Shown piece after piece: positions 17,501 through 55,537 of a DNA stretch of 55,537 nt. This DNA comes from Schmidtea nova (Eukaryota). The position numbers and the translations under genes are program-made. The notes under the pieces are model-generated. The model saw only the letters and a list, made by a program, of their open reading frames with translations, did no database searches and was not told where the DNA came from. The stretch is taken from positions 111,918,464 through 111,974,000 of the forward strand of contig CM097883.1 of the NCBI GenBank assembly GCA_044892505.1, given 5' to 3'. Position 1 is the first letter of the stretch; each line of letters starts with the position of its first letter.

Positions 17501-17747
17501 NNNNNNNNNNNNNNNNNNNNNNNNNNNNNNNNNNNNNNNNNNNNNNNNNNNNNNNNNNNNNNNNNNNNNNNNNNNNNNNNNNNNNNNNNNNNNNNNNNNN
17601 NNNNNNNNNNNNNNNNNNNNNNNNNNNNNNNNNNNNNNNNNNNNNNNNNNNNNNNNNNAATTGTTATTTTTGTCGTTTAGCGGAGTATTTTTAAAACATA
17701 ATTATATTATAAAATGTTTATATGTATTATTATTATTTTTATTTCAG

Positions 17748-19090: not shown

Positions 19091-19272
19091 TGACTATAGA
19101 TCAAAATAATTTTGATCTATAGTCATTATGAGAATTATTGATAATAATAATAAAAAAAGATCAAAGGTGAAAAAAGATAATTATGATAATTATAATTATG
19201 ATTATAATTATAATTATAATTATAATAATTATAATAATAATAAATAATAATAATAATAATAATAATAATAAT
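19091..19272 (+). repeat. Hammerhead-repeat leader with 5' inverted duplication, followed by an (AAT)n-rich tract
   Basis: TGACTATAGATCAAAA-TAA-TTTTGATCTATAGTCA (16-bp arms), then TTATGAGAATTATTGATA..AGATCAAAGGTG and AAT/TAT repeats. Confidence 0.8.
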
Positions 19273-26272: not shown

Positions 26273-27731
26273 ATTTTAAAATTCGTTTTTTACGATTTTT
26301 ACAATAAATAATTTAAAAAGAAAAGATACCGTGTTTTCTCATTATGCTTAGATTATTAAAATGCAAGAACAAAATCAATTCGTTTTGGAGAATTTTTTGA
26401 AAAAATCCGCAACATGAAATGAAACCGATAAATTTTGCTGATAACTTAACTCATTAAAACAAAAAGGATGAAAATTTTATAACTATAATTATATTTTATT
26501 TTTGACTTATTTGAAATAAATTTTAAAATTTTTTTATCGTTATATTGTTATTATTTTGAAATATTTTAAAGAATTACTAATACAGAAATGTTCTTCTCTA
26601 AATTTTAAAATGTAATTCCCATTATTTTGGTTAGAAATGTATTCAATTATGCATGTTCTTTTTACGCAAAGAAAAGTTTTAATTTCTGCTATTTGTAATG
26701 CAATTTATCATACCGATTCAGTGAGTCAGACATCGATGTAAAAATAATTTTCATATTTGTTTCGAAAATTTTAAATACCATGCTAAAAGTTTATTTTTCA
26801 GTTTTAAGTCAAGGAAATATGTAAATAAATTAATTCGAATCAATTCCAGTTTGGTTTCGCTCTCTAATTTGATTGACATTTTCGGTAAATGAATTTGTCC
26901 ATGATCAGATTTTGACTGGTTTTTGATAATCGAAAGATTTAGACAACATTTTTTTTTAATTTTAAATTTTATGTTTTCTCAAGAAATGTAAATGTTGTTT
27001 TAATAATACTCCGACTTTCAATTTGAAAATGTAGTAAATATTTGGATTTAATTTCGCCATGCAATATCTCAAAGAAATTAAAATATTTATTGTTTTAATT
27101 TGCGCTGGATTTTTAGAATAGAAATATTCAATTTTTATAATTGGATAAATGATACCCAAAATTTATCTCAATGTCAATATTTATTTACCATTTAGAATAG
27201 GTTTTCAAAAAAAAACATCTATGAAACTGAATATAAATCCCATAAATCCATTTTAATTGGCTTTGAATAATAATAAAATCTAGTTCTGCTTTATTCCGTT
27301 TCGAAGCGATTGACAAGCATCTATTTCTGTAAATGCGTTTGTGGAGCAATTTATTTTCTGATTTATTGCATGCTATTCTACATAAACATTGTATGAAATA
27401 TTTTGACAAAAATCATTTGTAATTCAGGATCCCGATCAATTAGTTCGGTCAGGTAAAACTTTATTTAATGATATTGTAGTCGTAAATTGTTGTCTTTTGA
27501 TTTTTAGTCATTTTTATTGAATTACTTTTTAAATTTATAATTTTGTTTTGTATGTTCGTTGATGTATCATTTCAATGTTTTCATTGTAAGAAATAAAAAG
27601 AAAAATTAACTCTGTATCGAATGAGATGTTTTCTGATTAACATATTTTTACAGATTAAGGTATAAAGTGCAAAATAATATGAATTTTAATATCAATCTTA
27701 AATAATTTGTTATTTAAAAATTTATTTATTG

Positions 27732-27783
<52 letters not shown>
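27732..27783 (+). repeat. (AAT)n microsatellite
   Basis: About 17 units. Also (TTA)n at about 30704-30770 and (TA)n at about 11569-11613, 15714-15746 and 38544-38581. Confidence 0.9.
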
Positions 27784-27784
<1 letters not shown>

Positions 27785-30700
27785 TAGTCAAGATTGACGA
27801 GGATTATTTTATAATCGAAAATTTTCTCAATAAAATTATTTTTGCAGCAAAGGCTTATTTTGTTACTTATTTATTAATTAATTTAATACTTAATGCTGCT
27901 ACCAAGGAANNNNNNNNNNNNNNNNNNNNNNNNNNNNNNNNNNNNNNNNNNNNNNNNNNNNNNNNNNNNNNNNNNNNNNNNNNNNNNNNNNNNNNNNNNN
28001 NNNNNNNNNNNNNNNNNNNNNNNNNNNNNNNNNNNNNNNNNNNNNNNNNNNNNNNNNNNNNNNNNNNNNNNNNNNNNNNNNNNNNNNNNNNNNNNNNNNN
28101 NNNNNNNNNNNNNNNNNNNNNNNNNNNNNNNNNNNNNNNNNNNNNNNNNNTAATAATAATTCGTTTTACATTATTTTTTAAACTTAACTATAATATTTAA
28201 AATATATAATATTATCAAATCATATATTTTCATATATTTTGTATATTACGGAGCTTGTAACTTCATTGACAAATGTAAATATAAACATTATTTCAATAAT
28301 AATTTTAGTGCACATCCATTATGAATAAACCATCGAAATCCAAGTCAATAAATAGAGATTTTGTTTTAGTTAAGATGTCAATTATTTGTTAAACTTTTGG
28401 AGAATAATTAAACCATAAATTTATTTTATTTTCAATTTTTAAAATGATTCTGAATCAAGAATTGAAAAATTTTAATTATTACGTATTTTTTATTTTATCC
28501 AATTTTTGTCTTTTCTATCTGATTATAAAAATTTTAATTTCTTAGTAGTTACTAATTATTCTATTTCAGAAATTTTCTTTTATTTTTTCATATAAAAACT
28601 ATATATCAAAAGTTTTTATTTAAAAATTAGCACACGAATTTAAAAAAAAATAATCTTTAGTCTTTATATAAAAAAATAAATGAAAATTTCTTAAATAGAT
28701 AAGAAAAGATGAAAATTGAATAAAATAAAATTTGTAAATTATATTAATTTTTAATATTAAGTTTGGTTTTTTTATTTTCCATTTGTATCGAATTTTGATT
28801 GATAATTACCCCATTTTTCATCGGCACTATTCAGAGTCCATTATTAAGTTTTTGCATATTGTGAAAGGTTATTCGGTAATTGACGATCCACATTTATGAA
28901 ATGGAACATTGATGATATATTTCATGTTCATTTTGTACGCTTTTCTCGTATTTTGCCATTGACTGTTGGATTTTTCTCTTTTTTTGGAAGTTATATTTTA
29001 TTGACATAATACGTAATTGAATCTAGTAAAGGAAATTATTTTCCTAGACAGAAAATTTTGCAAATATAATTTTTTGCGTTTATTTTACTAAAGCTAATGA
29101 AGATTTTATTATTTTCTTAATCATTTTTATAGTCAAAATTAAAAATAAATAGGAATATTTTATACGAAAATTTGATTTTAATTAAATTATATACTCAGAT
29201 ATTGGATTAAATACATGAAAATTAAAAATATCATTTATTAACTAAATAAAATTAATTAACTTAAATAATAAAAATTGATTTTATTAAAATATAATGGACG
29301 AAATTTTCAAATTTTTTTTTATGAAAATTATTTTGCACTTTATACCTTAATCTGTAAAAATATGTTAATCATAAAAAATATTAATCATAAATTTTTGAAA
29401 AAAATCAGTTTATTATAAATACAGCAATGCGCGAAACTGAGAAAAAAAATTAAAATATATTTAAATATAAAGTGCAAACTTAGGATTTTTGTTAAACTAA
29501 TATATTTATGTTAAAGTGTGCACTTCATTTTTATTTGTAAGTCATCTTATCTATTTTTATATATTTTCGTTTTTTCACCGTCTGAAATTAAGAAACCTAT
29601 AAGTGACATTTTTGAAAAATAAATTATTAAAGCCGCAGGATGAAGAGCAGATTTATCAAATTTACGTATGCATTGTAAAACGCTTACAAATTAGTTATTT
29701 TAAAAAAATTATCATATTTTTGTGGTATTACCTTTGTCAGATGTTTCTAGAGACAATTATAAGTCATACTCCCTAAATGTCACATATTCTCTTTGAATCT
29801 ATCAGAATGTAAATCACTAGTATTATCATTAAAATTTTGCTATTTTTCTTTATTTTTCTTTGAATTATAGATTTGTAATTTTATTTACTTTTTTCCTGTA
29901 GCTTTTAAATAAATACGTTAACCTTAACCTATGTCTTCGCCATTTTTTTCTTTCTTTGTATTTAAGAATTTTTTACAATATTGAAGTTAAGATTCAAGAA
30001 TGACTCTTTTATATAGTATTTGCTTTTATTTAATTATTTGTATTGCTATTCTTTTTAATAAACTCTATAACAAAAGTTGAAACGTTTCATTATTTAAACA
30101 AGCGTCTAAAGTTTATAGTCTAGTTCTAAAAAGTGTCAAAGTTTTCTAAACAAGAAAAGAGTGATATTCATTGAAAAAGTTGGAAAATAATTTTTTATAA
30201 ACAAAATTCAGATAATTAAAAACTTGTCTGGTTTATAGCTTCGTCGTTCAATGACGCGAATATCATAAATTAATTACCAAATTAAGTGTATTATTCAAAT
30301 AAACAACATATCAAAATGTCACTTATACAAATTACGGTTCTTTAGAGATAGATGAAGTTTAGTTTTTCAAAATTTTATAATAAATAAATTAGAAATTTTA
30401 GTAATTCAGTTAATTAAATTTAAAAATATGAATGTAGTTATTATTTCGTTTATCTTGATTATGGCAGTCTATCACGCTTGTAAAAGGTAGCACCAAAAGC
30501 TTCAGTTAAATTGAAAGCATTTTTCTTTTATTTGACAGAATAAAAATAAACGAAATCATAAATAACATATCAAAGATGACAAAAATAAAAGATTTTAATG
30601 AATTTAATTATTTTAATTACTAACTATTATTATTATTATTATTGTTAATTGTTTGTTATTGTATATTATATTTAAAAGGTTACTCTTCTGTGTTATAAAA

Positions 30701-30756
<56 letters not shown>

Positions 30757-30769
<13 letters not shown>

Positions 30770-30888
30770 CAATAATTCTCATAATGACTATAGATCAAAA
30801 TTTTTTTTTATAAACAATATTGTGTTATTGTTTATAAAAAAAAATTTTGATCTATAGTCATTATGAGAATTATTGATAATAATAATAA
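30757..30888. repeat. Perfect palindrome, 63-bp arms, 6-nt loop, made of two inverted hammerhead-repeat leaders
   Basis: Arms 30757-30819 and 30826-30888 are exact reverse complements, including the T9/A9 runs; loop TTGTGT. Confidence 0.95.
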
Positions 30889-33800
30889 AAAAAGATCAAA
30901 GGTNNNNNNNNNNNNNNNNNNNNNNNNNNNNNNNNNNNNNNNNNNNNNNNNNNNNNNNNNNNNNNNNNNNNNNNNNNNNNNNNNNNNNNNNNNNNNNNNN
31001 NNNNNNNNNNNNNNNNNNNNNNNNNNNNNNNNNNNNNNNNNNNNNNNNNNNNNNNNNNNNNNNNNNNNNNNNNNNNNNNNNNNNNNNNNNNNNNNNNNNN
31101 NNNNNNNNNNNNNNNNNNNNNNNNNNNNNNNNNNNNNNNTTTTAGTAAAAAAATTTAAAATGAAATTAAAATTTATAAATGAAAGTAGCAATAAATTTTC
31201 AATGTATCTGATCATTTAATTAATTCAGCATTTTCTAATAAACTTCAAAGTAAATTTTTGAAATGGATAATTTATCTGACGATTAGACTAATTGATATAA
31301 TAATATTCTCGAAATTCCTAAAGTATAATTCCTAAAACTTTAATTAGAAAAACGTCTTAAGGATATATATAAATCCTTTTAATGAATCTCCTTCTTTTCA
31401 AACACCCTTAAACAGCAGGCTTAGATAGGTTTCAAGAACATAAAGCTAATTAGTGCTTCCATTCCGCAGTCTAAAATATTTTCAGATTAAAAAAATTTCT
31501 ATTCATTTCATTTTAATTAAGTCTACTAAAATATTTTCAATTACTTAAACGTGGAATTTTTCAACAGAAATTGTTTCTGGAAATGGTTTATTTAAATAGG
31601 TTTTTTGGAAAGTGTCATTTAACACCTTTCTTTTGCATTTTTACCGTATTACATTATCTAGCGATATTTTGATTTGTGCTACCAGCTGACAGGTTATGAT
31701 TTATTATTTCATTTATTTTTCAGATAAAATAAATCAAATTGAAAATCAAATGAAAAAAATAATTAAAATTTAACTTATTTAAATGCCAGTTTTTGTAAAT
31801 TATTAAAAGTATGGTGCAACTCTGTTAAGAGCTGTAGNNNNNNNNNNNNNNNNNNNNNNNNNNNNNNNNNNNNNNNNNNNNNNNNNNNNNNNNNNNNNNN
31901 NNNNNNNNNNNNNNNNNNNNNNNNNNNNNNNNNNNNNNNNNNNNNNNNNNNNNNNNNNNNNNNNNNNNNNNNNNNNNNNNNNNNNNNNNNNNNNNNNNNN
32001 NNNAAATATTTGTTTTAATGAAGCTATTGTGTGAAGTAGAAGAGGTTGAATTAATTGTTTTCTTTTGACTTGATTATTGTGTTGTCAACTTTACCATGAA
32101 CTTTTAAAAGGAATGATTATCCTTTATATTACAAAAATGCATTTTTCTAAAAAAAAGTAATAATATATTTCTAATAATAAACATTTCTTTGATTTTTTTC
32201 ACCTTTGATCTATTTTTGCTATTTCACATATTTTGATTTTTAAGACATTAAATCAAAGTTATTATAAAAAGATTAGCTCAATAGCATATACATTATTATT
32301 GTGATCAAAACTCAGTGGATAAATAACATGCATGACATTTATTTTTTTTATAAAGGCTATTGATGAAAATTTATATATTTAGGCACACAAATTTTTAATC
32401 TATAGGTTTTAAATAAAACAATTAATGACAATTTCTGAAATAGAAAAAAACAGATAAAAGATGAACAAATTGTAAGATGTTAATGAAATAATAAAATAAT
32501 GAAATTCTAAATATTTCGATGAAACGATTTAATACATTAATTCACTATTACTCAATTTTTTATAAGAAATCTAAAGAAATTTCATGATATTACAATTAAA
32601 TTGACATAAAACAGTTACAAACTCACGCTAAAATTAATATCTTTGTCATAACCTTATTGTATGTATGCATCTTATCTATAGGCGTTTTTACTATTAAGGT
32701 GGTCTCTCACTTATGCACATTTCCATGCACATTATTCCCCTAACCCAATTCACTAGATCACAATCTATTGGGCAGAAGACCTACCTACAGTTCTTATGAG
32801 CTTGAGAAATTGCACAAGGAGAGAAGGCAAACCATCAGCTACCCAATTACCATATTTCTGAGTTGTAATTTGAAATTTTCTATGGTAATTTAATGTTTGG
32901 AAAAATTTGCGCAGGGATCCGCCCTCTTTTCAGGTTTCTTTTGAAAAGTTTTAAATTAATTTTATCCTTCAGAAAATTTGCGTAGAGATCTGTTGTGTAG
33001 AGATCTTGGTAAGATCACCAAGAATTTTCTTTAGGAAGTCTTCCCTTGTTTAACTCTTATTTATGCCCCAATTCTCAAAGTTCATAGGAGAAATAAACCT
33101 AAGGAGGACAATAACCCTGATCATAGCCCATTTTATCCAATCGAAAGATTTTAGATGCAACTTTATTACTCCATAAGACCATTCCGGAGAAATGTAAATA
33201 GCTTATTTTCATAGACTAGTTCGTCGACAGAATAAACTCTGAAAGAAAGGTTCAAGTGCTCTTTCAGACTACATATCTTCCACTTTCTCATTCATTTATT
33301 ATGGGAGTCAAATTATCTGAATGAGGATCATGAGTCAGAGCTTAAAATTGAAAAATAAAATGAAAAGTGGAAAAAATTATTTGACATAAAAATTTAACTT
33401 TTAATTACGATTACAAAAGTATAAAATACACACTTGTTTCTGTAGATTAGCATGCAATAAAGAAAAAATTTGATGTAGTTCCGCTTACTTATGAAACTTG
33501 ACTGGTAACAGCAAAATTGAATTAATAATTTTAGTGTCGTATTTATACTAAATTTTAAGTGATGGCCACGCATTCTGTTGTCGATCTTCATCTGATGTGT
33601 GTATAATTTGTCTCGCAAATATTATGAGTTATACGCAGATAAGTTCACATAATTTTAGATTTGGCAGCGAACACCTACATATGAATTTGTTTTTCTTGGT
33701 GCAAAATAAATTTATTTTAATTTTTAATAATTTTATTTATTTCTAACCATTTTTATCTTATCGCCATAATAACATGTGTGTATCCTTCTTATTGTCGTGT

Positions 33801-38538: not shown

Positions 38539-38582
<44 letters not shown>

Positions 38583-38612
38583 GAATTTTCAGCACAGCTA
38601 TTTTTAAGTGTG
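38583..38612 (-). repeat. Degenerate hammerhead-repeat copy
   Basis: Minus strand CACAC-TTAAAAT-AGC-TGT-GCT-GAAA-ATTC-GT; helix II pairing is retained (AGC/GCT) but the core has decayed. Confidence 0.5.
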
Positions 38613-40330: not shown

Positions 40331-41837
40331 ATTCACTTTATCTTGTTTGCTTAAATGTCTCCAACCATCTTCCTAGGCTCTTTGACGTTTTGTATAGTAA
40401 CTGCTTTTCTGTAGATGACAGTCCCGTTATTTTTCTCTTCACCTCTGATTCATAAAACATTATGGCTGTAGAAACCGTTTTCAAGTTAACTAGGTATGAA
40501 AAAGGCAAAGGAGAATGGGTGAAAATGAAAATGAAAACAACCGACATTTGATTTGTATGGGGTGATTCGCTGGTTAAGGGTACATTCAATACTGACTACA
40601 CAATTCGGTATTGGTCTTTGACGTATAACAGAAAAATCAACATTGTATTATGAGTCACTTATATTATTTATTTGCTATAAAATGTGGTGGCAGTGACATC
40701 TGTCATGCTTGTAATGAATGGCGAATTGTGGGATACAAGGGACAATTCAAATATCCCTATTCATTTCAATGGAGACTAAGTGTTTTCCTAATTCTTTTGC
40801 AGAAAATCGAGTTACATACATACACACACACATATATATATATATATCGAAAATATATATTTACTTTCGTTAGGTGAAGAAATGTTTGTTGTATTGTAGA
40901 TGTAAAATTATATAGTTTTAATGACAGTTAATTCATGTTATAACACGCGTCTGGAGGATAGGACAATGATTGAATAGTTTTAAACAAATAATTTGTATTT
41001 TTTAATTAAAAGTTGTAATTGAGAATAATTGTGGCTGGATGTTGTTTAGTCTCTACACACACACACAAAATCCAACAACTAGCCCTGGATTTCCGTTATA
41101 AAAATATAGGTGCTATATTTATGGAACATTAGTTAATGTAAACTGATAAATAAGCATTTATTTTTTGTTATCAAACTAGTTCACGTAAAATCGGTTTCAG
41201 TTAATTTTGGTCATTGCTTTTATTTTGTTTATTATATCTCATTAATTTGAATTTTCAATTAATCCTTTCATTCTTGGAACCATGCTACTAATTGATAAAT
41301 GTCTATTTATCAGATGTCTACTTGATTTTATATTAGACATTATCTCCCTAATCAAATGACAATTTCAACATTTCATTTCTTTCTGTTTCACATCTCCCTG
41401 CGATAAGTCTAATTAAACAATTAGAGAATTGTCGTGGCTTGATAATATATATCAAAATTCTATTAGGATCTGGGTGAAATTTATCAAGATGCGTTGATAA
41501 TTTTTTATTTTATGTTTTGATTTCAAAAAAAATGTTTTTTGAAAAATTACCGAAATTTTAATAATTAGTCTATTTTTCAAAATGTTTATTTTCTTTTTTG
41601 ATACATTTTTTGTTAATTATACTTAGTAGCTTATTATGTCAAAATAGTAATAATTAATCTTTAAAAGTACAGGATTTATATCAAATGGAATATTTAATGT
41701 TGTATGATTAGAAAATGTATTGATTAGAAACATATTGGAATCATTTTAGATGGAATTTACGGAACAAAATTCATCGATATTTATTTTTATTAATTGCAAA
41801 GATTTAGTTAATGAAAAACGTCATTTATATAACATCC

Positions 41838-41880
41838 GTACTATATATATTTCGTCAGATTACTTTCCATCTTCAGGTAT
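41838..41880 (-). ncRNA. Minimal type I hammerhead-like motif with canonical core, downstream of the Penelope ORF
   Basis: ATAC-CTGAAGA-T-G..(13 nt)..C-GAAA-TATATA-TA^GTAC. Helix I is 3 bp, helix III is a palindromic (AT)n, and helix II is poorly paired in this copy. Confidence 0.55.
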
Positions 41881-42111
41881 TCCGAAAAAACCTATGTTAA
41901 ATACAATCTCTTGAAACAAATTGCAAAATATAATTAGATAAAGTTTTATCAAAAATCAATCTAAATATTTATTTAAAAATGATTAACAACATTATAATTA
42001 TTAATTAATTTTTAAAATATTTTTTAAAAAATTTATTTATTTAATTTTAACAAAACCAATTTCATCATTCAATTTAATTAGTACAATAACACATCCATGA
42101 CAGCATCCTAA

Positions 42112-42670
42112 CTATTTTAAAACATTCGAAATACACGTGTTCACTGCATTCTGCACATTAATTTTTGGATTCAAAGATCTTATCAACAAAGCTTCCCATA
42201 TAATGCGTTCATAATGATTATTGAGATTTTTAATAAAATAAAAAAATCAGACATGTCAATCAATAAAGACTGTAACAGAATGTTCAGTAATATTAGACAC
42301 TCCCCTCTGTTGGCCATGTTCAAGAACTCGAGTACAGAGATAACGGACAGTCTCTCCAATGTTGGTGGCATTATACCTATTATATGTAAATTGATAGACG
42401 AGATCTGTATACAATCCAATTTAAGTTTGCGACTTATTAACAAACACATTACTCACTTTACACGAATTGGAAGCAATCCAAAAGTTTAAACCGCTCAATT
42501 GCTTACCTATCTTCCTTCTATAATCTTTAATATCCTCCTTATGTGGTAATACCATCAGGAATTTAGGCTTTTTTTGTTTGATAGATCCAATACTGCCATT
42601 TACTATATCATCCAAATTATCAGCTATATTACATTCGTGCTTACAAGGATCCTTCAGATTATTGATACAA
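42112..42670 (-). mobile_element. Penelope-like element remnant: thumb, linker and GIY-YIG endonuclease
   Basis: KPKFLMVLPH..LNFWIA.., DLVYQFTYNRYNATNIGETVRYLCTRVLEH, ..ERIIWEALLIRSLNPKINVQ; stop at 42112-42114; runs into a gap. Confidence 0.85.
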
Positions 42671-43289
42671 NNNNNNNNNNNNNNNNNNNNNNNNNNNNNN
42701 NNNNNNNNNNNNNNNNNNNNNNNNNNNNNNNNNNNNNNNNNNNNNNNNNNNNNNNNNNNNNNNNNNNNNNNNNNNNNNNNNNNNNNNNNNNNNNNNNNNN
42801 NNNNNNNNNNNNNNNNNNNNNNNNNNNNNNNNNNNNNNNNNNNNNNNNNNNNNNNNNNNNNNNNNNNNNNNNNNNNNNNNNNNNNNNNNNNNNNNNNNNN
42901 NNNNNNNNNNNNNNNNNNNNNNNNNNNNNNNNNNNNNNNNNNNNNNNNNNNNNNNNNNNNNNNNNNNNNNNNNNNNNNNNNNNNNNNNNNNNNNNNNNNN
43001 NNNNNNNNNNNNNNNNNNNNNNNNNNNNNNNNNNNNNNNNNNNNNNNNNNNNNNNCAGTTCCACGATTTTGACATTTTTTACAAAATAAATTAATAAATA
43101 AGTAACAAAATAAGTCTAAGGTGCAAAAACAATTTTATCACTTAATAAAATTGTTTTTGCTGCAAAGGCTTATTTTGTTACATATTAATTTATTTATTTA
43201 ATACTTAATGCTGCGACCAATGAATCACCATTTTATACTTTTATAGAATGTTTGAAAGTAGAAGATAATCACCATGATCGATAAATCAA

Positions 43290-43560
43290 TCCTCTTACCA
43301 TATTTATCTTATATTTAAACTCACAAAACTTTTCTGGAGAAGTATAAAGATCATTATCAGTTGGTTTTCTATAAATCTCTGTCGTAAATAAATCTATCAT
43401 CGTTCCCTTTTATTACCAGATTTGAAAACGTTATTGAGGATTCATTCTCGGTTCCACGCGTGAACACGGTGTTTTTATGTAAACCATTCATATAATTAAA
43501 AAATTGCTGCACATGATCTTGATTTTTAAATATAAGAAAAATATCATTCACATATCTTTT
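43290..43560 (-). mobile_element. Penelope-like RT palm remnant, probably the same element as 42112-42670
   Basis: NDIFLIFKNQDHVQQFFNYMNGLHKNTVFTRGTENESSITF resembles the PLE 'DD.F....H...F...LN..H.NI.FT.E.E....L.FLD' region. Confidence 0.8.
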
Positions 43561-44140
43561 ATATACAATTGGTTTTTCAAATTGTAAAGAAGTAATTTTT
43601 TTAAAAGTATTTAAAAAATTTATTAATCATTTTAAAATTAAATTCTAGACTGATTTTTAATAAATTTAAATTATATTTAAAATTTAAAACTTTATCTAAT
43701 TATATTTTATAATATGTTTCAATAAATTGGATTTAACTTAGATTTTTTTCTGGATACCTTAAGATGGTAGTGAGACTGTTGAAATATATAATACGAACGT
43801 TATATAGATGGGGTTTTTCATTAATTTATATTTATGTTAGTTGTTCATTTCAATTTCTTATATTAATACAGTTTTCTAAATGGAATTTTGTTTTCATATT
43901 TAATTCTTTCAAAGTCTTCTTATGACAATGAGACTATGATAATATAATAAGTCTTCCAATATGACGTATAGTAGTCATTACATGTCCATAACTTCCAGGA
44001 GCATTCAACATAAATTTTAATTTGTAAAATACAATTTTAATGTGAAAACACTGATGAAATTTTTTTAAAGCTTTTATCATGCTTAATTTTATGTTTTCAT
44101 TTGGTTTTTGTCAATTTATGCTTTCGCAAATAATAATAAT

Positions 44141-44250
44141 GCACACTTGATAAAGGCTGTGCCAAAATATTGTGTCCTTGTTAAAAATGTTTTTGATCTA
44201 TAGTAATACAATTATGGAAATTATTGATATAAATAGAGATCAAAGATGAA
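44141..44250 (+). ncRNA. Hammerhead-repeat copy with G12-to-A change, plus leader running into a gap
   Basis: GCACAC-TTGATAA-A-GGC-TGT-GCC-AAAA-TA-TT^GTGT (44141-44175), then TTTTGATCTATAG..AGATCAAAG. Confidence 0.6.
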
Positions 44251-46039
44251 NNNNNNNNNNNNNNNNNNNNNNNNNNNNNNNNNNNNNNNNNNNNNNNNNN
44301 NNNNNNNNNNNNNNNNNNNNNNNNNNNNNNNNNNNNNNNNNNNNNNNNNNNNNNNNNNNNNNNNNNNNNNNNNNNNNNNNNNNNNNNNNNNNNNNNNNNN
44401 NNNNNNNNNNNNNNNNNNNNNNNNNNNNNNNNNNNNNNNNNNNNNNNNNNNNNNNNNNNNNNNNNNNNNNNNNNNNNNNNNNNNNNNNNNNNNNNNNNNN
44501 NNNNNNNNNNNNNNNNNNNNNNNNNNNNNNNNNNNNNNNNNNNNNNNNNNNNNNNNNNNNNNNNNNNNNNNNNNNNNNNNNNNNNNNNNNNNNNNNNNNN
44601 NNNNNNNNNNNNNNNNNNNNNNNNNNNNNNNNNNNNNNNNNNNNNNNNNNTAATAAATAATACTATAAGTTTCAAAATTTAGAGAATCACAACTAGTTTC
44701 CTGATATTAAATTAAAAATTTAATTATATAAAAATTGACTAAATATAAATAAGTGATGTATAAATTTTGTGGATAAAATCGTATAATTAATTAATTTTAT
44801 GAATTACAGTGACTGATAGCTATTCACCATACTTTAGTGATATTCTGCCTATTTTCAAAATTAATATTTTTAACAGTAATTTTAAATTTTAACTGACGAT
44901 ATTTGATCAAATTATTGGGGTGATGGCAAGAAAAAAATATAGTTTTCAATAATTTTTAAATGTAATACAAAACAAATATTTTACCCAATCTGATATTAAA
45001 ATAATAAGTATAAAACGAAACCACTTTTTCTGTCAAAAATCTATTTAATTGAAAAATTCCTTAAAATAAAATAAAATTTAAGACATGAATAGTAAATTAT
45101 TTTTATGGAAAAATCAGCATTATTCAAATTACACTGACAGCCGGAAAAGAGTTGCTTATCAATGACGCAACCGATTGGAGCCAAGCCACTATAAAAAGAA
45201 TTGTAAAAGATTTATATTACCTAAAATCGTCACAGAAAAAATTGATATTTCTGAAGTTTTTCATATGATAACGGAATTATTGAAGTAACAAAATATACTG
45301 CAATTTTATTTATTGAATAATAATTCACCCCGGTCTATCAAAAGAATTTTCACTACGAAATATTTTTCTAAATAAATATTTAGACTAAAACGATTCAGAA
45401 ACTGAGTCATGGGATTTATTTCCCAGGGCTTATAAATGATATTTTAATATAGAGAACACAAGAAGGTAATAGTATTCTATAATTGTAGACAAATGGGGAC
45501 AACAATCTCTAGGAATGTGTTTCATGTCATGTTGTATTAGGCACAAATGATTGCTTTGAGGAATGCCATACAATGATCAAATTTTGATTGAAGTTTTATG
45601 ACTTTTTGATAATAGATTAATTAAATAAAAGTTTAAAAAATAATTTCCCTAAATATACCCCTTTCAAATTGATAATAACATATCAATAAGTTATCATTCA
45701 GGTTTAATATTTATAAACATATCTTTAGTGATATCGAAGTTTTGTATTTTATATTGGTCTTCGACATCCTTACGTCATCCTTGACAATTAATTTTCTCTA
45801 ATTTTGCATTTTTATATAAATCATTGAAGGTTTTCCAAACATGTTCAACGATAATCAAATCATGACTCCTAGGTGATCATAGTTAGAATCAAACATAAAT
45901 TCTTTTATAAATTACGTACTAAGGCTAAATTTCCTTATACTTAAATAGAAATAATAAAGTAAGTGGAACCAAAGGCATTATTATCAATAAGACAGATATG
46001 TAAGATTAATTTCTCAACATAACTTCCACTAACACTGAT

Positions 46040-46340
46040 GCACTATCTCCAACAGTAAAACGCTGATTTGAAAGCCATTTTGATAATTTCTTGTCCTTTC
46101 TACGCAAGATATTTATCCACATTATCATTCAAATCATGCTTTTATTCAAATATTTTACCTCTCAGATGATTGAATAACAATAAATCACTAGGTACAAGAT
46201 CTGGACTCTATGGTGGAAGGTCCAACTGCACAAACCACATTTTCCTACTGATTGTTGTGTTCGATAAGATGTGTGGATTGGAGCGTTGTCATGAAAGTAA
46301 ATAAGGGTCCTGGTTTTGTGGCTTGCACTGTATTGTAAAT
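46040..46340 (-). mobile_element. mariner (DD34D-type) transposase C-terminal remnant
   Basis: HDNAPIH..LPP*SPDLVPSD.LLFNHL with one frameshift. Confidence 0.75.
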
Positions 46341-47059
46341 AGACTCAGTTTTATTTATGAAAAGTGAGAAATGACATTCCTTAGAATCTCATCATAGCTT
46401 CCTATTTGTCTTTATTTTGTCATTATTCATTTGAATGTAAATATCGCCAAATATGGAGTACGAATTATAACAGATATTCACAACAATTATCTCGCTAATT
46501 GTTTAAATATTATTTTTTATTTTCTAATTCATTTGCGGACATCTTCAGGACCACAAAAATGTTACTAATCATTAAAATGGACCTTCTTGAAGCTCACTTT
46601 GTCAAAGATACAATTAGAAACCCATCCAAACTTGATTAGTTTATTTGCACCCGGTAAATTTATTTTCACGGATAATTACGAGGCATTTAGATATTTCCAA
46701 ATGTCTCCTACATGTGAGACTTAGGAAATTTTAGTTTTAGGAATTGATACTCTTTCTTCAGTGGTTTTAAAATTTATAATAAATTCTTTTTGAATTTTCA
46801 TTTTTTGTTTCGTAATTCGATGTGTATTTTGTGTCTTTTATGGGTTTAGGATTCAAAATAAACTGAATACTCAATCTAGGAAATTTTGAAGCCATATTTC
46901 TCTTTTGTCCTTTGGTGAGCACGTAGAAGTAAATGTCCTCGGACAATATCCCATCGTATGATTATCCCCCCTGACAATAATGTTAAAATCAAAATCTTTT
47001 AGATTAAAATGTAATACATATTTTTGGAACAGGAATATCAAACACTCATGCAAAAGGAG

Positions 47060-47880
47060 TTATTCCATTATCTATTCTAGTTTTACCCGATCATCACAAA
47101 ACAGCAACCGACAGTGAGAGTTGTCTTTTGTTTGATCTCGGTCCAACATCGACTAGAATTTTAATCTTTGGAACACAAGAAAATACGGATCTTTTACAAC
47201 AATCTTCACACTGGTTCTTTTACGGTGCATTCGAAATAGGATCTTCAATTTTCTTTTGGCTTTATAAGATATATGTGCTCGTCAATGGGCGTACAATTCC
47301 ATTTGTGTGCTCTACTACCAAACAAGTTTAAAGTGACATAGAAATAGTTACTTAATCAGTTGATATAAGTTAATGGAAACTTGATATCGGTTTCGATTAT
47401 GGCTGATTTTGAGCAAACCCTGATATAGAAAATGCACTAAGTTCTACTCAAAACTGGAATCAAAGATTATTTCTTTCACTTAAGCCAAAATATCGATAAA
47501 AAAATTCAGAAGCATGGTTTTTAGCAACGATATAAAGATGACACCGTATTTTCTCTGAAAATGAGGATGATACCTGCTCATGCTTTTATTCCACTACAAT
47601 ATGTGATTATTGACTTCGAAAAGTTATTTGAAGAACTTCCAACTGAAATACAACTTATTGTTCACTACTTCGAAGACACCTACATGGGCAGATTACCATG
47701 TTGAGGGCGTATTCCATCTGTCTTTGAAAAGAACCTGTGGAACATGCATCAATGATCACAAGATGAACTTGAAAGAACAAACAACTCGATTGAAAGATAA
47801 CAAATTCCAACGTTAGTTGTAATCATCCATATATTTGGAGCTTCCTCGACTACATCAGACGTAAACAAGCTGTGTAACAA
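47060..47880 (+). mobile_element. MULE (Mutator-like) transposase remnant
   Basis: CLLFDLG..RILIFGT..SSHWF, IMADFEQ, FHLSQNI..KIQKHG, AFIP, VHYFEDTY, LWNMH, RTNNSIE. Confidence 0.8.
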
Positions 47881-48825
47881 GTCCACTTGATGACACAGGC
47901 TTTGTCTGACCATACGCCTCAACCTGGAAAAAGTCTAATTTGCCTTATTTATTAAAAGGACATGTTTTTATCTATACGGGAGATTGCCTGGTGTGGATTT
48001 TATCCTAGTGAATATTATCTTGATAACAGAAAATATAAATATTATTATTATATTATTATTAATGATATTAATATTAATAATATGATCGTAGTTATCATTG
48101 TTATCATTACCATAATTTAAAATAAATAAATAATAAACCGATATTAGTGATTGGAGATTTGAAACAATATTAAATATTTAGACAAATTAATAAAAAAATA
48201 CAAATTGACCTGATTAATCAAGTAATTAATTTAATCTAAAAATAAAATTAGTATTATGTTAAAAATAAAAATAAAAAATTATGGAGTTATGGAAATTAGT
48301 AAACATTAAAGGTAAATGCACAAAAATTCAAGTGCAACAATAATTAAATAAAAAAGATGACATTTAAAGGAAAAAGTTAAAATATTTTAATTTTGTAAAA
48401 TCCAAAAATCAATATTTTCTTGAGAGATGTGTATGAGATGAGTTGTAGATGATCTGTTAATTGCTTAAATAATTGATTAATTAAAATGTTGTTGACGATA
48501 TTAATCATCTCAGTATGAAAACGATATAGCATAATATGATAGGTGTAAACTGTGAAAACTTGATTAAATTTTCTATACTAGTTAAAAATTAAATTTGTAA
48601 AGAGATTCAAAAGTAGCTTTGTAATATAACTCAAATATTGCCTTTCAGATTTACAAGTGTTTTATATCCAACCAGTTTGTGGCAGTTTTCCTTAGATTAC
48701 TTTCACATGTAAGCAAACCATATCAGTGTGTATTAAAGTGATCAAATAAATAATTGAACTACATTGTGTTTATATCAATAATTTCCATAATAGTATGACT
48801 ATAGATTAAAAGTTTTTTAACAAGT

Positions 48826-48860
48826 ATACAATATTTCGGCACAGCCTTTATCAAGTGTGT
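48826..48860 (-). ncRNA. Most complete minimal hammerhead-like motif of the family (U3-A8 core)
   Basis: Minus strand ACACAC-TTGATAA-A-GGC-TGT-GCC-GAAA-TA-TT^GTAT. All core positions are present and helix I has one mismatch in this copy. The leader continues to about 48785. Confidence 0.7.
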
Positions 48861-49736
48861 AAATTGTGTAAATTTTGAAAATTTAGTTTATTGAAAATAA
48901 AACTTAACTGTGTTTGGTTTTGTTGTTTTGAATAAGGACACGAGGAGTCAGACTTTAACGAAATTTTTGCCTAAGTTATTATAACATTAAAAAATTGCAA
49001 AGTGCAGAATTTTATTTTTCGTTTCGACAACAACCACTAAATTTGGGAATAACTTGGAAATAACTTGCTAAAAGAATAAAAAACAAAATTGTTAATTTAT
49101 TATATATAATATTAAATGAATTAATTAAAGAGGTTCAACAAAATCGGACAGAATTGATCAAAACTTCAGAAGATTGTTATTAAAATTCAATTTGTAAATG
49201 AAATTATTGCAATTTTCATATCGTTTAAAACATGTTTACTGAATAACTGTCATATAATGTTAAGATTAAAATATACTTTTTCATAAATATATAAATTCCC
49301 TCTTGTTTATCTAGATTCATTTTTAGCAAAGATAAACAGAGTTTTTTATTCTTTTATATATTCTTTTGAATATATTTAATATGCAAATATATTCATTCTT
49401 GCAATTGTTTCGTGACCAAATCTAGATTTAATATATTATATATTTTTGCCTTGGTGAAAAAAACTGTATTTTAGATTATAATTCAATTCAGACTTTTTAT
49501 TATATTTTTAAATATTAACTGGAAAGCAAATTTTTTTTAATTTTATTCATTGTTATTCTTGAGCTTCTGAATCCATTTCTGGAGGGGATACGGATTAAAA
49601 TTTCCACGTTTAAACTGATTGAATATGTATCCTTTATTCTTTACCAAACTAAACTCCTATAATTAATATACCATCACTGCTTAAATTATTAAATATTATT
49701 TTAATTTATAAAAATGATCCAAGTTTCTTTTTAAAT

Positions 49737-49845
49737 GCACACTTAACAAAGGCTATGCAGAAATATCGTGTATTTAACAGCTAAAAAAACTTTTAAAAAC
49801 TTTTTGATCTAGTCATAATTATGTAAATTATTGATATAATCAAAA
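49737..49845 (+). repeat. Degenerate hammerhead-repeat copy with leader
   Basis: GCACAC-TTAACAA-A-GGC-TAT-GCA-GAAA-TA-TC^GTGT (G5A and C11.1A changes), then TTTTTGATCTAGTCATAATTATG..ATTATTGATA. Confidence 0.6.
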
Positions 49846-50046
49846 TGTAATAAAATCTTTCATTAATTAAAATGAAATATTTTCTCAAATTTGTGTATGT
49901 TTGAACTGTCCAACGGGTGTATTTATGAAATTTAAGAGCCATTGACTTGAACAATTTTCATTTTATATTTGTTTATTTTAATACTGTGAAATAAATGTTT
50001 TTTTTGTGTCATTAGCAATGAAAGCATCAATCATTTATAATTTTTT

Positions 50047-50353
50047 TTACTTTTTTGTGATAAGTCAGAATATATTTCTTTAATATCCAAATAATTAATA
50101 AGAGTCGAAAATATTTTATTTGTCAATTAATAATAATAGTAGCAATAACAATATAATAATGTAAATTACAATGGTAATTCAAACGCGACATACTTCTCTG
50201 TATTTGAGCTTCAAAAAAATATTATTAAAGAGGAGGGTTGTTTTCAATCATACTGATATTTACAAATATGACAATATTTTAAATTTACAATTGTTCTTAT
50301 TTTAAGTTGTTACCTCTAATTTCTCCAATTTTTGTAAATAAGATGATATGGCT
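50047..50353 (+). repeat. ~310-bp direct repeat copy A (copy B at 54068-54382)
   Basis: Colinear with several substitutions and indels; copy A ends exactly at the LTR boundary. Confidence 0.9.
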
Positions 50354-50498
50354 TGTTGTGTTATTTGTCAAAGACATTGAATAACACGTTTATATAAAAA
50401 GTTTATTTCATATAAAAATTCTTTATTTAAACAAACTAACTGTTTAAATAATATTAATATTGGTAATCAATTTATGTTTATAAATTAATATCCCAACA
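50354..50498 (-). repeat. Complete 145-bp 3' LTR
   Basis: Starts TGTTG directly after the PPT, ends CAACA, and contains AATAAA. Confidence 0.85.
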
Positions 50499-51738
50499 CG
50501 CCTCCTCTGTAGACTGTCAGGCTATAGTGGCTGTTTTCTATCCATGGTTTTAGTCTGTCAATCGATACTATTCTTTCATCTCCATTTATATTGATCTTGA
50601 TTGTTTTATTGCTTGGTGATATTTCAATTACTTGGTACGGACCTGTATATGAATTGTCTAGCGACTTCCTGAATTCTGATCGTAGCCACACCTTCTTACA
50701 GTCTGTAAACAGTTTGCTCACATAGCTTTTTTCTTTTATATTGTTGTCCTCTTGAGAATCTTTGAGAGTGTTAGAGACATTAGCCTGGATTGTTTCAAGA
50801 TCATCCTCATCCGCAACGGTTGGTGTTGATATTGTGAAGTATCCAGGCAGTCTGGTTGTTTGTCCAAATGGTAATTGGGTAGCTGATGGTTTGCCTTCTC
50901 TTCTTGTGCAATTTCTCAAGCTCATAAGAACTGTAGGTAGGTCTTCTGCCCAAGTTCTTGATGCATTGTCTGAGTGTGCTCTGATTGAATTCTTCATTGA
51001 TCTGTGCCACCTTTCTATTTTCCCATTGGATTGTGGATGATAGGCTGTGGTTCTATGTTTCTCTTCACCCATGATTCTACAAAATTCTTTGAACTTTTCT
51101 GACTGAAATTGTAAACCTTGATCAGTGATAATTATTTCCGGTACACCAAATCTGCTGATCCATTCCTTTTTAAATGTTTTTATTATTACTTCCGAGCTGA
51201 TCTCATGTATTGGAATTGGTTCTACTCGAGATGTTCCACGATCAATCATTGTTAAAACATATCTCTTGTTGTTTACTACAGGAAGAGGCCCAACGATATC
51301 GATATGGACCGTGTTGAATCTTCCTTTGGTTAGAATTTTTCCTATCGGAGTCTTAGTATGTCTAGATATTTTTGTAATCTGGCATTTTTGACACTCCCTG
51401 CACCATTCTGATATATCCTTTTTCATCCTCGACCAGACATATCTCTCTCTGATTAGATCAATTGTTGGTGTTGGACCGGGATGTGAAATATTGTGGAGTC
51501 TTTCGAATTCTTGATATCTGAGATTCTTTGGAAGTACGACTCTTGCATGACCTAGTGTTGTGTCAACAACAATGTTATCTTCAGTTACACATAATTGTAG
51601 ATCACTGTTCTTGAGTGTTCTTAGAGTTTCATCAGTGCTTTGTTCTTTTCGGAGTAAGTCAGTCGTAATTCCGATTAAGTTTATAGTAGTTTTGATTTTG
51701 ATTGGTTTGGTGTTTGGTCTTGATAGCCAGTCGGCCAA
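50485..51738 (-). CDS. pol: Gypsy integrase region (417-aa open frame)
   Basis: ADWLSR, HHCC (LHNISHPG..CRECQKCQ), HIDIVGP, ITDQG, YHPQSNGKIERWH, YTGPYQVI..VSIDRLKP. Confidence 0.9.
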   Translation of the reverse strand: MADWLSRPNTKPIKIKTTINLIGITTDLLRKEQSTDETLRTLKNSDLQLCVTEDNIVVDTTLGHARVVLPKNLRYQEFERLHNISHPGPTPTIDLIRERYVWSRMKKDISEWCRECQKCQITKISRHTKTPIGKILTKGRFNTVHIDIVGPLPVVNNKRYVLTMIDRGTSRVEPIPIHEISSEVIIKTFKKEWISRFGVPEIIITDQGLQFQSEKFKEFCRIMGEEKHRTTAYHPQSNGKIERWHRSMKNSIRAHSDNASRTWAEDLPTVLMSLRNCTRREGKPSATQLPFGQTTRLPGYFTISTPTVADEDDLETIQANVSNTLKDSQEDNNIKEKSYVSKLFTDCKKVWLRSEFRKSLDNSYTGPYQVIEISPSNKTIKININGDERIVSIDRLKPWIENSHYSLTVYRGGVLGY

Positions 51739-53487
51739 TGAGTTACTTTGCCCTTGTATGTATTTCCATTCAAAGTTGAATCGGCTAAGATATTAATGAT
51801 TCTCCACTGTCTTGGTGATGGATCCTTCATAAACATTGTTCTTTGTAGCGGTTTGTGGTATACGTTGATTTCAAAAGTTGAACCGTCGATAAATTGCTTA
51901 AAGTGTTTGACAGCTTAGTATACTGCCAAGAGCTCTCTGTCGAATGTTGAATATTTTGTTTCTGTCTTTGTTAATTTTCGAGAGAAAAATTCTGTAGGAA
52001 CACATCTGTTGTCCTCAGTCATCTGGTTTAGGCTGGCACCAACTGCTATACCCGATGCGTCTGTATTGAGGATAAATGGTCGTCTTGGATCAGGATAGTT
52101 GATTCTTGTTATAGACAGTAGCAATTCCTTTGCTTTCTTCAAAGATTTTTCGTGATTGGAGTTCCATGAAAAGCTTTTGCTGTTTTTGATTGATGTATTT
52201 ACCAGCTTATGTAGTGGAGTTAACACTTCCGAAAGATTAGGCATCAACCAGTGATAATATCCGATGCTGCCGATGAACCATCTTAACTCTTTGATATCAC
52301 TTGGTGTACTTGTGTATTTGATGGCTTCTATTCTTGTATCCGTTGGTTTGATTCCATTCTCCGAAATGTTGAAGCCTAGAAAGTCAACGTTTTCTTTGCA
52401 GAACTCACATTTTTCATTATTTATCACAAGATAATCCGATTCTAGACTCTTGAGAATTTCTTTCATATGTTCCTCGTGTTCTTCGAGATTGCCTAAAAAA
52501 TAAGAATGTTATCTTTGTATGCAAGACAATATCGCCGTGTGTCTTTTAATATTTCATCCATGTGATGTTTAAACGTTTGAGATGCATTTCATAGTCCAAA
52601 TGGCATCTTTACATATTCATATAACCCAAAAGGGGTGATAACTGCAGTTTTCGGGATGTCATCCTGATGTATTGGAATCTGGTGATAAGTTTTCTTAAAA
52701 TCAAGTTTTGTGAACCACTTGCTGCCTACAATTCCGTCAAGGATGTCGTTGATTCTTGGCAAGAGGTATTTATCGGGTCGTGTGATATCATTTTGTAGTC
52801 TATAATCTCCACATGCCCGCCAAGATCCATCTGATTTCTTTACTACCACTAGGGGTGACGCCCATTCACTTTTGCTTGGTCGTATTGTGCCATCTCTAAG
52901 TAGCTTGTTAAATTCCTCTTTAGTAGCATTATATTTCTCTCCAAATAACCTTCTTTGCTTTTGAGATACGGGAATTTGTATACGGGAATATGTATGCGCA
53001 GCTGTGTGAGTGGAACTGTGTTGAAGGCTTGATCTATTGTGTTGAGGGCTTGATCTAAGATAATCTTGTCTTTTAATCTGAATATTGTTTTGAGGTTGCA
53101 ACTGACGTTAATTTTGTTTCTTGAGAGGAAGTCGGCTCTCGATATTGGTTTGGTGACGGCAGCTACCGCAAATGTCCATATGAACTTGTCCTTGAATCCT
53201 TTGATTTGAAATTCAATAATTTTGTCACCTAAATATTTGATTGGAGAATTGTTGGCTGATAGAAGCGATCGATTTGAACTAACCTTGTTTGGCTTGTGAG
53301 TCGAAATTGGTAGAACATTTATATCAGCTCCTGTATCTACTAGGAATGCTACAAGGAAATTGTTGATATAAATATTGACGTTAAATATTTTGGGTTTGAT
53401 ATCCGAGTATGTTGATATGATTCTGAAGGTTCCACTCCTCGGAGTTAGTGGAACCACTTGTCGTTTCCGTGGATGCCATTGTTCCAT
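51739..53487 (-). pseudogene. pol: Gypsy protease, RT and RNase H, fragmented by stops and frameshifts
   Basis: FLVDTGAD; SEWASPLVVVKK..WRACGDYR..KLDFKKTYHQI..MPFGL; the YxDD motif reads YKDN; LNTDASG..YSTFDRELLAVY. Confidence 0.9.
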
Positions 53488-54067
53488 TCACAAGGTGGTT
53501 GACATTTTCTCGCCTTGACTCCAAACATATCGTGATAATAGAAGAGCTTTGAATTGCACTGATTTAGTTGTCGTCTTCTGAGCACGTTCAATTCTTCTCG
53601 AAGATCTTTTAATTCTTTTTCCTTTACCGAGTTTGCTAATATATCTACGGGCATGCAGTTCTTTGAAGTTTCTTTATGTCTTACATTAATTAATTTGTCA
53701 GCTAGAGCTGCTAGATATGAGAGATCGTCATTGGATTGAGCTAAAAGTATTGTCTGGATATGTGAAGGCAATAATCTCATGAAAAGTTCACGATTTATAT
53801 AACTGTTTTGGTTAAAGTAAACCAGGTCTATTAGTTGCATTTGAAAATTGATTTGTTGAAGGGCCTCTGAAGGTGATCTGTCTCCCAGTGAGTCATCTTT
53901 AAATAAAGCCGATATTGACAGCTTCTGTTTCGCCTCGAAATCTTTTATTGTGGCCCCTCGAAGATTACTGTATGGACTTGGTTTGCTGGCATCCAAATAA
54001 GATTGAAACTTCATTAGCATCTCAGTTGAAATGTTTGAAATGAGATGGAAGTATTTAGTTACTTTCG
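53445..54067 (-). pseudogene. gag: Gypsy gag, N-terminally truncated
   Basis: TKYFHLISNI..PYSNL..LGDRSPS..LLPSHIQTIL..LAALADKL; knuckle (F)YYH..FGVKARKCQPPC with the first Cys lost; C GGA AAC slippery site at 53469-53463. Confidence 0.9.
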
Positions 54068-54382
54068 TTACTTTTTTTGTGATTAGTCAGAATATATTTC
54101 TTTAATATCCAAATAATTAATAAGAGTCGAAAATATTTTATTTGTCAATTAATAATAATAGTAACAATAACAATAACAATATAATAATGTAATTTGCAAT
54201 GGTAATTCAAACGCGACATACTTAAGAAAAAGTGCCCGTCTTCTTTGTATTTGAGCTTCAAAAAATATTATTAAGGAGGAGGGTTGTTTTACAAATATGA
54301 CAATATTTTAAATTTACAATTTTTCTTATTTTAAGTTGTTACCTCTAATTTCTCCAATTTTTGTAAATAAGATGATATGGCT
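54068..54382 (+). repeat. ~310-bp direct repeat copy B
   Basis: Matches 50047-50353 and continues into non-LTR sequence at the point where copy A meets the LTR. Confidence 0.9.
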
Positions 54383-55249
54383 ATTGGTGATTCTTGAATT
54401 TTTCTTTTCTATTTTATTTTATACTCGTTTAATCTTTTCATATGTCATAGGAAAAACGCAACAAACTTTAGATAAGACTGTCCTTCTTCTCTGTACTTAA
54501 GTATTATCAATTAATGATTATGAGCTTGGTTCTTCAAACATACAGTTTATAAATATTTTTGTGAAATTTTAACAAAATATTTTTAAAGAATATTTTTAAA
54601 AATTTGCTTAACTTAATTCAAAATTTTAAAAATTCTTTTGATAATTTTAAAAACTTTTTAAATTTTGAATTTTAAAAGTTATTGGTGAATTGTTTAAATA
54701 ATTGAATCACACGATTATGAGAATTATGTTCTCGAAATAATTTGGGAAATATAATTCAGATTGGCATTTATTGTTAATTTTGAATTATATAATTAGAATT
54801 TGTTGTTCAGATTTTAGTGACAATATTATTTTTTATCACTTATAATCTATTTTAATTATACAGATTCAATTAAAATATCTGCTTATCTCTCTAATTATAT
54901 GTAAAATTGTATATTTGAATTAAAATAAATATACATTTAAGGATAAAATATATCGTGATTTACAATTATTTCTTATATAATTTTTTACAGAAAAAGATAA
55001 GTGGTAATGAAAAGGTTGCAGAAAAGAAAATATGTGTCAATAAATATATATTTAATTTATATTTAATTTTGAATTATACCATTTTTGTCTGTCAATTTAA
55101 ATTTTCAGCGAGTATATAATAATAACTTGATTATTAAATAAGGAATCCGCGAGCCATTCGTGAGAATTATTAACTTTAACGAAGTCAACATAAACTATAA
55201 TTTTATATTAATATGATTTTTTTCACAAATATAACATCATAATTTTCTT

Positions 55250-55376
55250 TTCGTTTCACCTTTGATTTCTTTTTTTATTCAATAATTTACATTTTAATTT
55301 TTATAAGACTATAGATCAAAAGTTTTTTTGGTTGTTAGGGGCACGATATTCTGCAAAGCTTTTTTCAAATGTGTAA
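55250..55376 (-). repeat. Degenerate hammerhead-repeat copy with leader
   Basis: Minus strand ACACA-TTTGAAAA-AAGC-TTT-GCA-GAA-TA-TC-GTGC, then TTTTGATCTATAGTC..AAATCAAAGGTGAAA. Confidence 0.55.
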
Positions 55377-55537
55377 ATATGATGTAAAATCATAATTAGC
55401 AACCAAAAAAAATTTATCTTTAGTCTTACTAAAAATTAATATGAAAATTATTGAATTACGTAACAAATATAAGCTTCAACATTTATGGAATATTTTCAAT
55501 TAAAAATATCTAACACGGCGTTTTTGCACTTAATGAA

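Follow-up and report, generated by a model that had tools for sequence, protein, structure and literature searches.

A high-copy dispersed repeat of Schmidtea nova with a U3-A8 hammerhead-like head and Penelope-type anatomy

Hammerheads of Penelope-like elements and related systems

Cervera & de la Peña 2014 (PMC4209133) defined the minimal hammerheads that Penelope-like elements carry in their flanking repeats. In these motifs helix III is missing and one base 5' of helix II is unpaired; they are predicted to act as dimers and are weak in vitro. The same study described a U3-A8 variant in Schistosoma mansoni, with about 1,300 mostly solitary matches, some of them paired on opposite strands, and a variant in the Penelope element of Drosophila virilis in which a 2-nt palindromic insertion stands in for helix III (PMC4209133). 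Frangieh et al. 2024 (PMC11167929) studied Poseidon, an element of Anolis carolinensis. It has two internal start sites of reverse transcription, about 90 nt 3' of the cut, and these account for an optional tail of 30-40 bp; both strands of AT-rich targets are cut and extended. Hammerhead mutants had no effect on insertion in vitro and no RNA ends were found at the cut site (PMC11167929). Penelope-like elements at large are recognised by 5' truncation, inverted truncated partners, tails and a bias for microsatellites, and Naiad elements prosper without hammerheads (Craig et al. 2021, PMC8557442). Animal retrozymes, finally, have been interpreted as non-autonomous derivatives of Penelope (Li et al. 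2026 preprint, bioRxiv 10.64898/2026.07.22.740005).

We analysed 55,537 nucleotides of the Schmidtea nova genome (hereafter the window), in which a dispersed repeat begins with a hammerhead-like motif. This focal motif shares with Cercyon of S. mansoni a type I layout, an open and short helix I (4-5 bp), an unpaired nucleotide 5' of helix II and the U3-A8 pair; neither has a true helix III, and dimer action is expected of both. Both occur in thousands of copies, mostly solitary and some in opposite-strand pairs. They differ in helix II, which has 7-8 bp in Cercyon and 3 bp with a 3-nt loop here, and in the link to a reverse transcriptase/endonuclease ORF, which was shown for Cercyon whereas none adjoins the focal copies in the window. 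The A-UA-U of the focal motif recalls the palindromic insertion of D. virilis, and the focal element has its 5' end at the edge of helix I where the D. virilis variant has the 3' end of an intron; yet in the latter the core is C3-G8 and helix II is bulged and has 6 bp. The layout can also be likened to that of Poseidon, where the flanking repeat meets the ORF at the hammerhead, but the ORF of Poseidon starts inside helix II whereas the focal family has a conserved ATG about 50 nt past the predicted cut. Moreover, the Poseidon mechanisms were measured in vitro, and for the focal family they are inferred. Animal non-LTR retrozymes are likewise short non-coding units with a hammerhead, whose mobilisation is attributed to Penelope-like elements (PMC7229834; Li et al. 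2026). They form tandem arrays, carry canonical type I motifs and give circular RNAs, whereas the focal family is dispersed, solitary or head-to-head.

An earlier note on this DNA implied that the combination of features was new. In fact, all of them have precedent: minimal hammerheads with U3-A8, an unpaired base and no helix III were published in 2014 for the Penelope-like elements of S. mansoni (PMC4209133). The family is probably a further case of the known Penelope hammerheads.

The motif and its repeat family

The focal motif occupies 34 nt of the minus strand (48828-48861) and was delimited by direct reading, a core-pattern search and a structural descriptor. From 48861 to 48826 the strand reads T ACACAC TTGATAA A GGC TGT GCC GAAA TAT T GTAT. 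The core UUGAUAA, the extra A, helix II (GGC/GCC), the UGU loop, GAAA, AUAU and U as H17 are intact, and helix I forms three of its four pairs (GUAU in place of GUGU). The predicted cut falls between 48830 and 48829. All invariant positions (U4, G5, A6, A9, G12, A13, A14, A15.1, U16.1 and a non-G at 17) are present in this copy and in the family majority, and positions 3 and 8 form a Watson-Crick U-A pair in the five of five copies that cover them. A palindrome replaces helix III, AUAU in most copies and AAUU in the copy at 38593, both self-complementary.

In the window, a 25-nt core pattern with at most three mismatches finds 44146-44170 (+) and 48831-48855 (-) where 0 are expected, and a 13-nt pattern, GGCTGTGCCGAAA, with at most two mismatches finds 7 sites where 0.20 are expected and the largest shuffle gives 2; one of the seven, at 38034, looks like chance. 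A strict minimal-hammerhead descriptor has 0 matches in the window, with a chance rate of 0.025 per window-sized Markov sequence (~53 kb). When one helix-I mismatch is allowed it finds the focal copy only, at a chance rate of 0.125. Such rates amount to hundreds of matches per gigabase, so that the parse alone is not rare genome-wide; its weight comes from the motif being the common head of a huge repeat family. No window copy carries an intact hammerhead. The earlier reading of a hammerhead core with U3-A8 is thus borne out, every invariant nucleotide being there. The proposed covariation of positions 3 and 8 must be given up for the family itself, where the pair is fixed, so that one can speak of covariation only relative to other hammerheads.

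The family was sought with an nhmmer profile built from four copies and run on the window. Near-complete copies lie at 44140-44250 (+), 48861-48749 (-), 49736-49860 (+) and 55375-55255 (-), with E values of 1e-24 to 1e-26. Further matches are 17500-17424 (-; E 2.5e-12), the 5' part of which is masked by Ns, the two 5'-truncated copies 30815-30879 (+) and 19101-19169 (+), and 38612-38579 (-; E 0.01). Hence, of about nine related copies proposed before, the focal one and five to six others are recognisable, and those at 18586 (E 0.11) and 19755 (E 0.94) are doubtful.

The focal copy is a whole short-form unit (48769-48861, -), as delimited by the loose ends of contigs in one sequencing run (139 at 48861 and 62 at 48769 in X1) and by nhmmer. 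Its 5' end is sharp at 48861 and the common part stops near 48769 (ATTATTGATATAA), past the equivalent of which other copies continue in A-rich variable sequence. The copy at 44140-44250 (+) is 90% identical to it, has G12 changed to A and is of the long form, running with GATCAAAG into an N run. That at 49736-49860 (+) is a decayed short form with G5 changed to A, U7 to C and helix II broken (GGC/GCA). A heavily decayed copy at 55255-55376 (-; the 55340 copy, placed by nhmmer and alignment) has the 3' extension ATCAAAGGTGAAA...AATTATGAT and stands head-to-head with an inverted 5'-truncated partner at 55396-55468 (+; nhmmer). The copy at 17410-17500 (-) is young; the N run 17501-17658 covers the 5' half of its motif, and on the 3' side it reaches the Ns of 17277-17409. 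Two 5'-truncated copies form a palindrome at 30754-30903, with arms 30754-30819 and 30826-30891 that are 98% complementary; the right copy runs on into a tail and then into an N run. Another 5'-truncated copy, at 19091-19190 (+), has a tail and a short inverted stub at its 5' end. An old motif fragment at 38579-38612 (-) has helix II as AGC/GCU (A10.1-U11.1) and the palindrome AAUU, and is interrupted by a (TA)n run. The window has 17-38% G+C and eleven N runs, which were left unfilled in all analyses. Five of these eleven (17277-17409, 17501-17658, 18739-19090, 30904-31139 and 44251-44650) end or start in or beside copies of the focal repeat, so that parts of several copies, including one motif head, are unreadable. 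The exact 21-nt motif was not found in viral and metagenome contig collections.

To gauge abundance, contigs of four public DNA runs from one study (X1-X4) were mapped onto 44651-49950. In X1 the contig depth summed over 48722-48898 reaches 1.4 million, and neighbouring single-copy bins have about 42. The ratio of element to single-copy depth, which is not a copy number, is about 27,000-33,000 in all four runs and implies tens of thousands of family copies. The view of a dispersed high-copy family is therefore confirmed.

The unit is about 95-140 bp long. Contigs split sharply at 48861 into unrelated AT-rich continuations, and hence the unit begins exactly where the motif does, with T(G/A)CACAC. 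Shortly past the 3' end of the motif the contigs split again into subfamilies (48828, 48822, 48819 and 48815), and some contigs contain head-to-head joints of two motif heads. Behind the conserved 34-nt head come about 20 nt of variable linker, then a second block, again conserved and with the ATG (TTTTGATCTATAGTC...ATTATG.GAATTATTGATA), and one of two ends. The short form (48860, 49737) ends with ATTATTGATA and an A/TAA-rich run; the long form (55340, 19103, 44141, 17495, 30816) has an extension of about 40 nt, GATCAAAGGTGAAA...AATTATGAT. The alternation of short (ATTATTGATA(TAA)) and long forms corresponds to the optional tail of 30-40 bp that is typical of Penelope-like elements. The second block opens with UUUGAUCU, the complement of AGAUCAAA within the extension.

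Inverted 5'-truncated partners stand head-to-head at 30754-30891, 55255-55468 and 19091-19125. Copies truncated at 5' exist (30816, 19103, 55396), yet most contigs end at the fixed base 48861, unlike the variable 5' truncation typical of Penelope-like elements. This fixed end speaks to some extent against reading the repeat as a Penelope module. Nor is there an excess of conservation in the core over its flanks, as one might expect of a ribozyme following the earlier note: the head is no more conserved than the second block downstream.

Penelope-like sequences in the window and full-length relatives

The window contains a decayed Penelope-like element at 42117-43626 (-), split by the N run 42671-43055, with the motif C region of the reverse transcriptase (RYVND...FT), the thumb (YRKPT) and a GIY-YIG endonuclease (VYQF...IGET...EH). 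The reverse transcriptase piece has 881 relatives in a library of 1.8 billion proteins. The long ones among them carry RVT_1 and end in a GIY-YIG-type motif, to which the VYQF...IGET...EH piece of the window aligns with E 7e-7. Pfam gave nothing useful on these short decayed pieces. A minimal hammerhead-like motif with a canonical core (CUGAAGA + U ... GAA AUAUAU; 41840-41882, -) follows on that strand, about 235 nt 3' of the remnant's stop. The motif recurs at 43752-43794 (+) in an inverted partner arm (43600-43824), which is 83% identical to 41808-42027 and adjoins the truncated 5' end of the remnant. Such elements, and this architecture, are thus present in the window, which does not imply that the remnant is the parent of the focal family. 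Indeed, the local alignment of the focal family with the 3' region of the remnant scores below the 95% null, and no ORF for a reverse transcriptase or GIY-YIG endonuclease adjoins any focal copy in the window. Both results count against the reading as a Penelope module.

A covariance model built from five Penelope hammerheads scores further motifs in the window as candidates. A second repeat family at 27788-27909 (+) has the head UUGACGA G GAUUAU UUU AUAAUC GAA AAUU U, in which U3 faces G8; its motif (27788-27830) is the best match of the Penelope-hammerhead model (20.1 bits, E 0.035). The other copy of this family is a palindrome at 43073-43210, with arms 43073-43138 and 43145-43210. The U-G at positions 3 and 8 would be intermediate between C-G and U-A. 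At 31270-31324 (+), between two N runs, a canonical-core motif (CUGACGA U ... UUCUC GAAA; 19.6 bits, E 0.046) has an imperfect helix II and probably represents one more Penelope hammerhead in decay.

Public contigs yielded five full-length relatives (L002-L006). All carry a hammerhead 10-90 nt before the ATG of the ORF, and in L004 the ORF is flanked by one on either side. The motif consists of CUGAYGA, one unpaired U, a helix II of 5-6 bp, GAA and a palindrome (ACGU/AUAUAU). All of helix II is paired (100%) and four of its five pairs show compensatory changes, a result that none of 500 shuffles reaches. The focal motif is like these in the order of its parts, the single unpaired base, the GAA followed by an A...U palindrome and the site before an ATG. 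It differs in having U3-A8, an unpaired A and 3 bp where the relatives have C3-G8, an unpaired U and 5-6 bp with strong covariation.

Probable origin of the repeat and predicted activity of its head

The family has a defined layout, is very abundant and shows rearrangements of Penelope type. Together, its inverted 5'-truncated partners, its tailed forms, its conserved ATG and the presence in the window of a remnant with reverse transcriptase and GIY-YIG pieces support the association with Penelope proposed before. The repeat probably belongs to a Penelope-like retroelement, either as its 3'-terminal module or as a short, non-autonomous derivative of it with only that module left, and its cleavage is predicted. 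By analogy with Poseidon, reverse transcription would initiate within the element, at either of two positions some tens of nt 3' of the hammerhead. We propose that these two start sites produce the short and the tailed 3' forms, and that the ability of both target strands to prime produces the head-to-head inverted partners. The hammerhead might assemble only as a dimer, through AUAU/AUAU pairing of two copies, and would be at best a weak and facultative cutter. Most templates would be copied uncut, since most copies keep the motif and share a 5' end at its first base. This common template start could be the transcription start of master copies or the border of a discrete non-autonomous unit.

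The centres of the palindromes bear on whether some templates are cut. That of 30754-30891 lies at 30822/30823, 1 nt from the predicted cut (30821/30822), and that of the second family at 43141/42, about 2 nt from its predicted cut (~43139/40). The other two are at +8 and +25 relative to the cut, the latter being the apex of the 19091-19190 stub, 3' of the cut. Two of four palindromes, from two hammerhead families, are therefore centred 1-2 nt from the cut, which hints that some templates are cleaved; two out of four are too few to claim it. One might go further and suppose that dimers of the U3-A8 motif with its 3-bp helix II, in trans or in tandem, cut in vivo, and that the cut-centred palindromes are footprints of reverse transcriptase running off self-cleaved templates. 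This seems unlikely to us. If it were true, such palindromes would be the first in-genome evidence that ribozyme cleavage sets the 5' ends of Penelope templates.

A possible, if doubtful, alternative is that the module derives from Penelope and its hammerhead-like head is no longer a ribozyme, having become an GCACACUU / AGG-CUGUGC hairpin, a protein-binding element of the template RNA or a hitch-hiking relic. In six window copies, 88% of the cells of helices I and II are paired and one cell is compensatory (AGC/GCU of helix II at 38593), which 205 of 500 shuffles equal; for the competing hairpin, 85% of cells are paired. Covariation within the family is not significant for either structure in these copies. 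Nearest-neighbour energies, calculated on a 41-nt motif string, give -8.0 kcal/mol for the double hammerhead versus -19.9 for the alternative duplex. The predicted fold of the monomer is a GCACAC../..GUGC hairpin, not a hammerhead, and this alternative hairpin is the minimum-free-energy fold in two natural copies; folds of natural copies show no stability above shuffles (z -1.4 to +0.4). Conservation of the core is matched by that of the downstream block. In addition, hammerhead mutants of the Anolis element still insert in vitro and its cut site shows no RNA ends (PMC11167929), and Naiad elements thrive without any hammerhead (PMC8557442). But the family majority keeps all ten invariant core nucleotides and a Watson-Crick pair at 3-8, none of which a plain hairpin needs. 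One old copy exchanged a G-C of helix II for A-U on both sides, the AUAU and AAUU variants both remained self-complementary, and two palindromes are centred at predicted cut sites. Hence, the support that the sequence lends to a ribozyme fold comes from the invariant nucleotides and the self-complementary AUAU (AAUU once), not from covariation. We retain the reading of a Penelope-type module with predicted cleavage.

Chance resemblance is very unlikely. On this account an unrelated repeat, similar to a SINE or a MITE, would have a head that happens to fit a relaxed hammerhead descriptor in an AT-rich genome. Relaxed descriptors are indeed permissive (~0.025 per 53 kb, i.e. hundreds of chance matches per gigabase), and neither profiles nor covariation speak for the motif. 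Rfam has 0 matches, in the whole window at the gathering threshold and in 48700-49000 at E<=10, in line with the earlier expectation that standard searches would miss it, and a covariance model built on five Penelope hammerheads (R1) gives the focal motif 6.1 bits only, leaving it unrecognised. Against chance, the motif is placed as Penelope hammerheads are, just 5' of an ATG and less than 100 nt from the 3' end of the element, and it has the odd extras of these hammerheads: a single base left unpaired ahead of helix II, and GAA followed by an A/U palindrome. Penelope-like elements are also known for inverted partners truncated at 5' and for tailed forms (PMC8557442). The unit has no tRNA or other pol III head, includes runs of T4-5, and lacks at its 3' end an inverted repeat of its 5' end.

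An animal non-LTR retrozyme, with tandem units transcribed, self-cleaved, circularised and copied back, is extremely improbable, and so is the retrozyme-like label of the earlier note: the unit is short and hammerhead-bearing, and retrozymes are argued to be non-autonomous Penelope derivatives (bioRxiv 10.64898/2026.07.22.740005), but the window copies are head-to-head or solitary and 0.9-11 kb apart, and the unit extends from the start of the motif to about 60-100 nt past the cut, neither end being at the cut itself.

Three specific candidates were rejected. A tandem retrozyme is contradicted by the lack of head-to-tail arrays in the window and by ends that lie off the cut site. A MITE with terminal inverted repeats does not fit, as searches of both strands place the head motif only at the 5' end of the unit and the palindromes are paired 5'-truncated units. 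A pol III SINE, with a head derived from tRNA, 5S or 7SL RNA, was dismissed given no tRNA in a tRNA scan, no Rfam match and T4-5 runs inside the unit.

To our knowledge, a 3-bp helix II with a 3-nt loop is below all described sizes (5-8 bp). If active, the motif would therefore lower the known size limit of natural hammerheads: a U3-A8 hammerhead with such a helix would be the smallest natural version. The family would then also be a second phylogenetically independent U3-A8 lineage. Its copy number, together with the cut-centred palindromes, could open the role of the hammerhead in Penelope-like elements to study from genome sequence alone. At present the value of these results is mainly for annotation. 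Ribozyme models will miss tens of thousands of modules and inverted pairs, and the focal modules are easily mistaken for MITEs or SINEs.

Other repeats and mobile elements are found in the window. Between 4950 and 5830 there is a dense array of 8/16/25/49-nt periodic repeats (GAGTGCTTGGTGCTTT-like; ~47% G+C), where long minus-strand ORFs encode repeats of the STKHS/KAPRTP type; segments of its flanks are duplicated at 2663-2843 and 4324-4504. A further high-copy repeat lies at 45890-46300, with a contig depth about 100x single copy and many internal skip joints. An LTR retrotransposon occupies 50038-54396 (-), with direct repeats at 50038-50367 and 54060-54396 and pol ORFs with Integrase_H2C2, rve, RT_RNaseH_2 and RVT_1. 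A G+C-richer island (46-48%) at 24215-24929 (+) contains a fragment of a Tc1/mariner-type DDE_3 transposase. Finally, an intact ORF of 302 aa at 11908-12816 (-) encodes an ISXO2-like (DDE_Tnp_IS1595) transposase domain, the nearest relatives of which are 48-53% identical.
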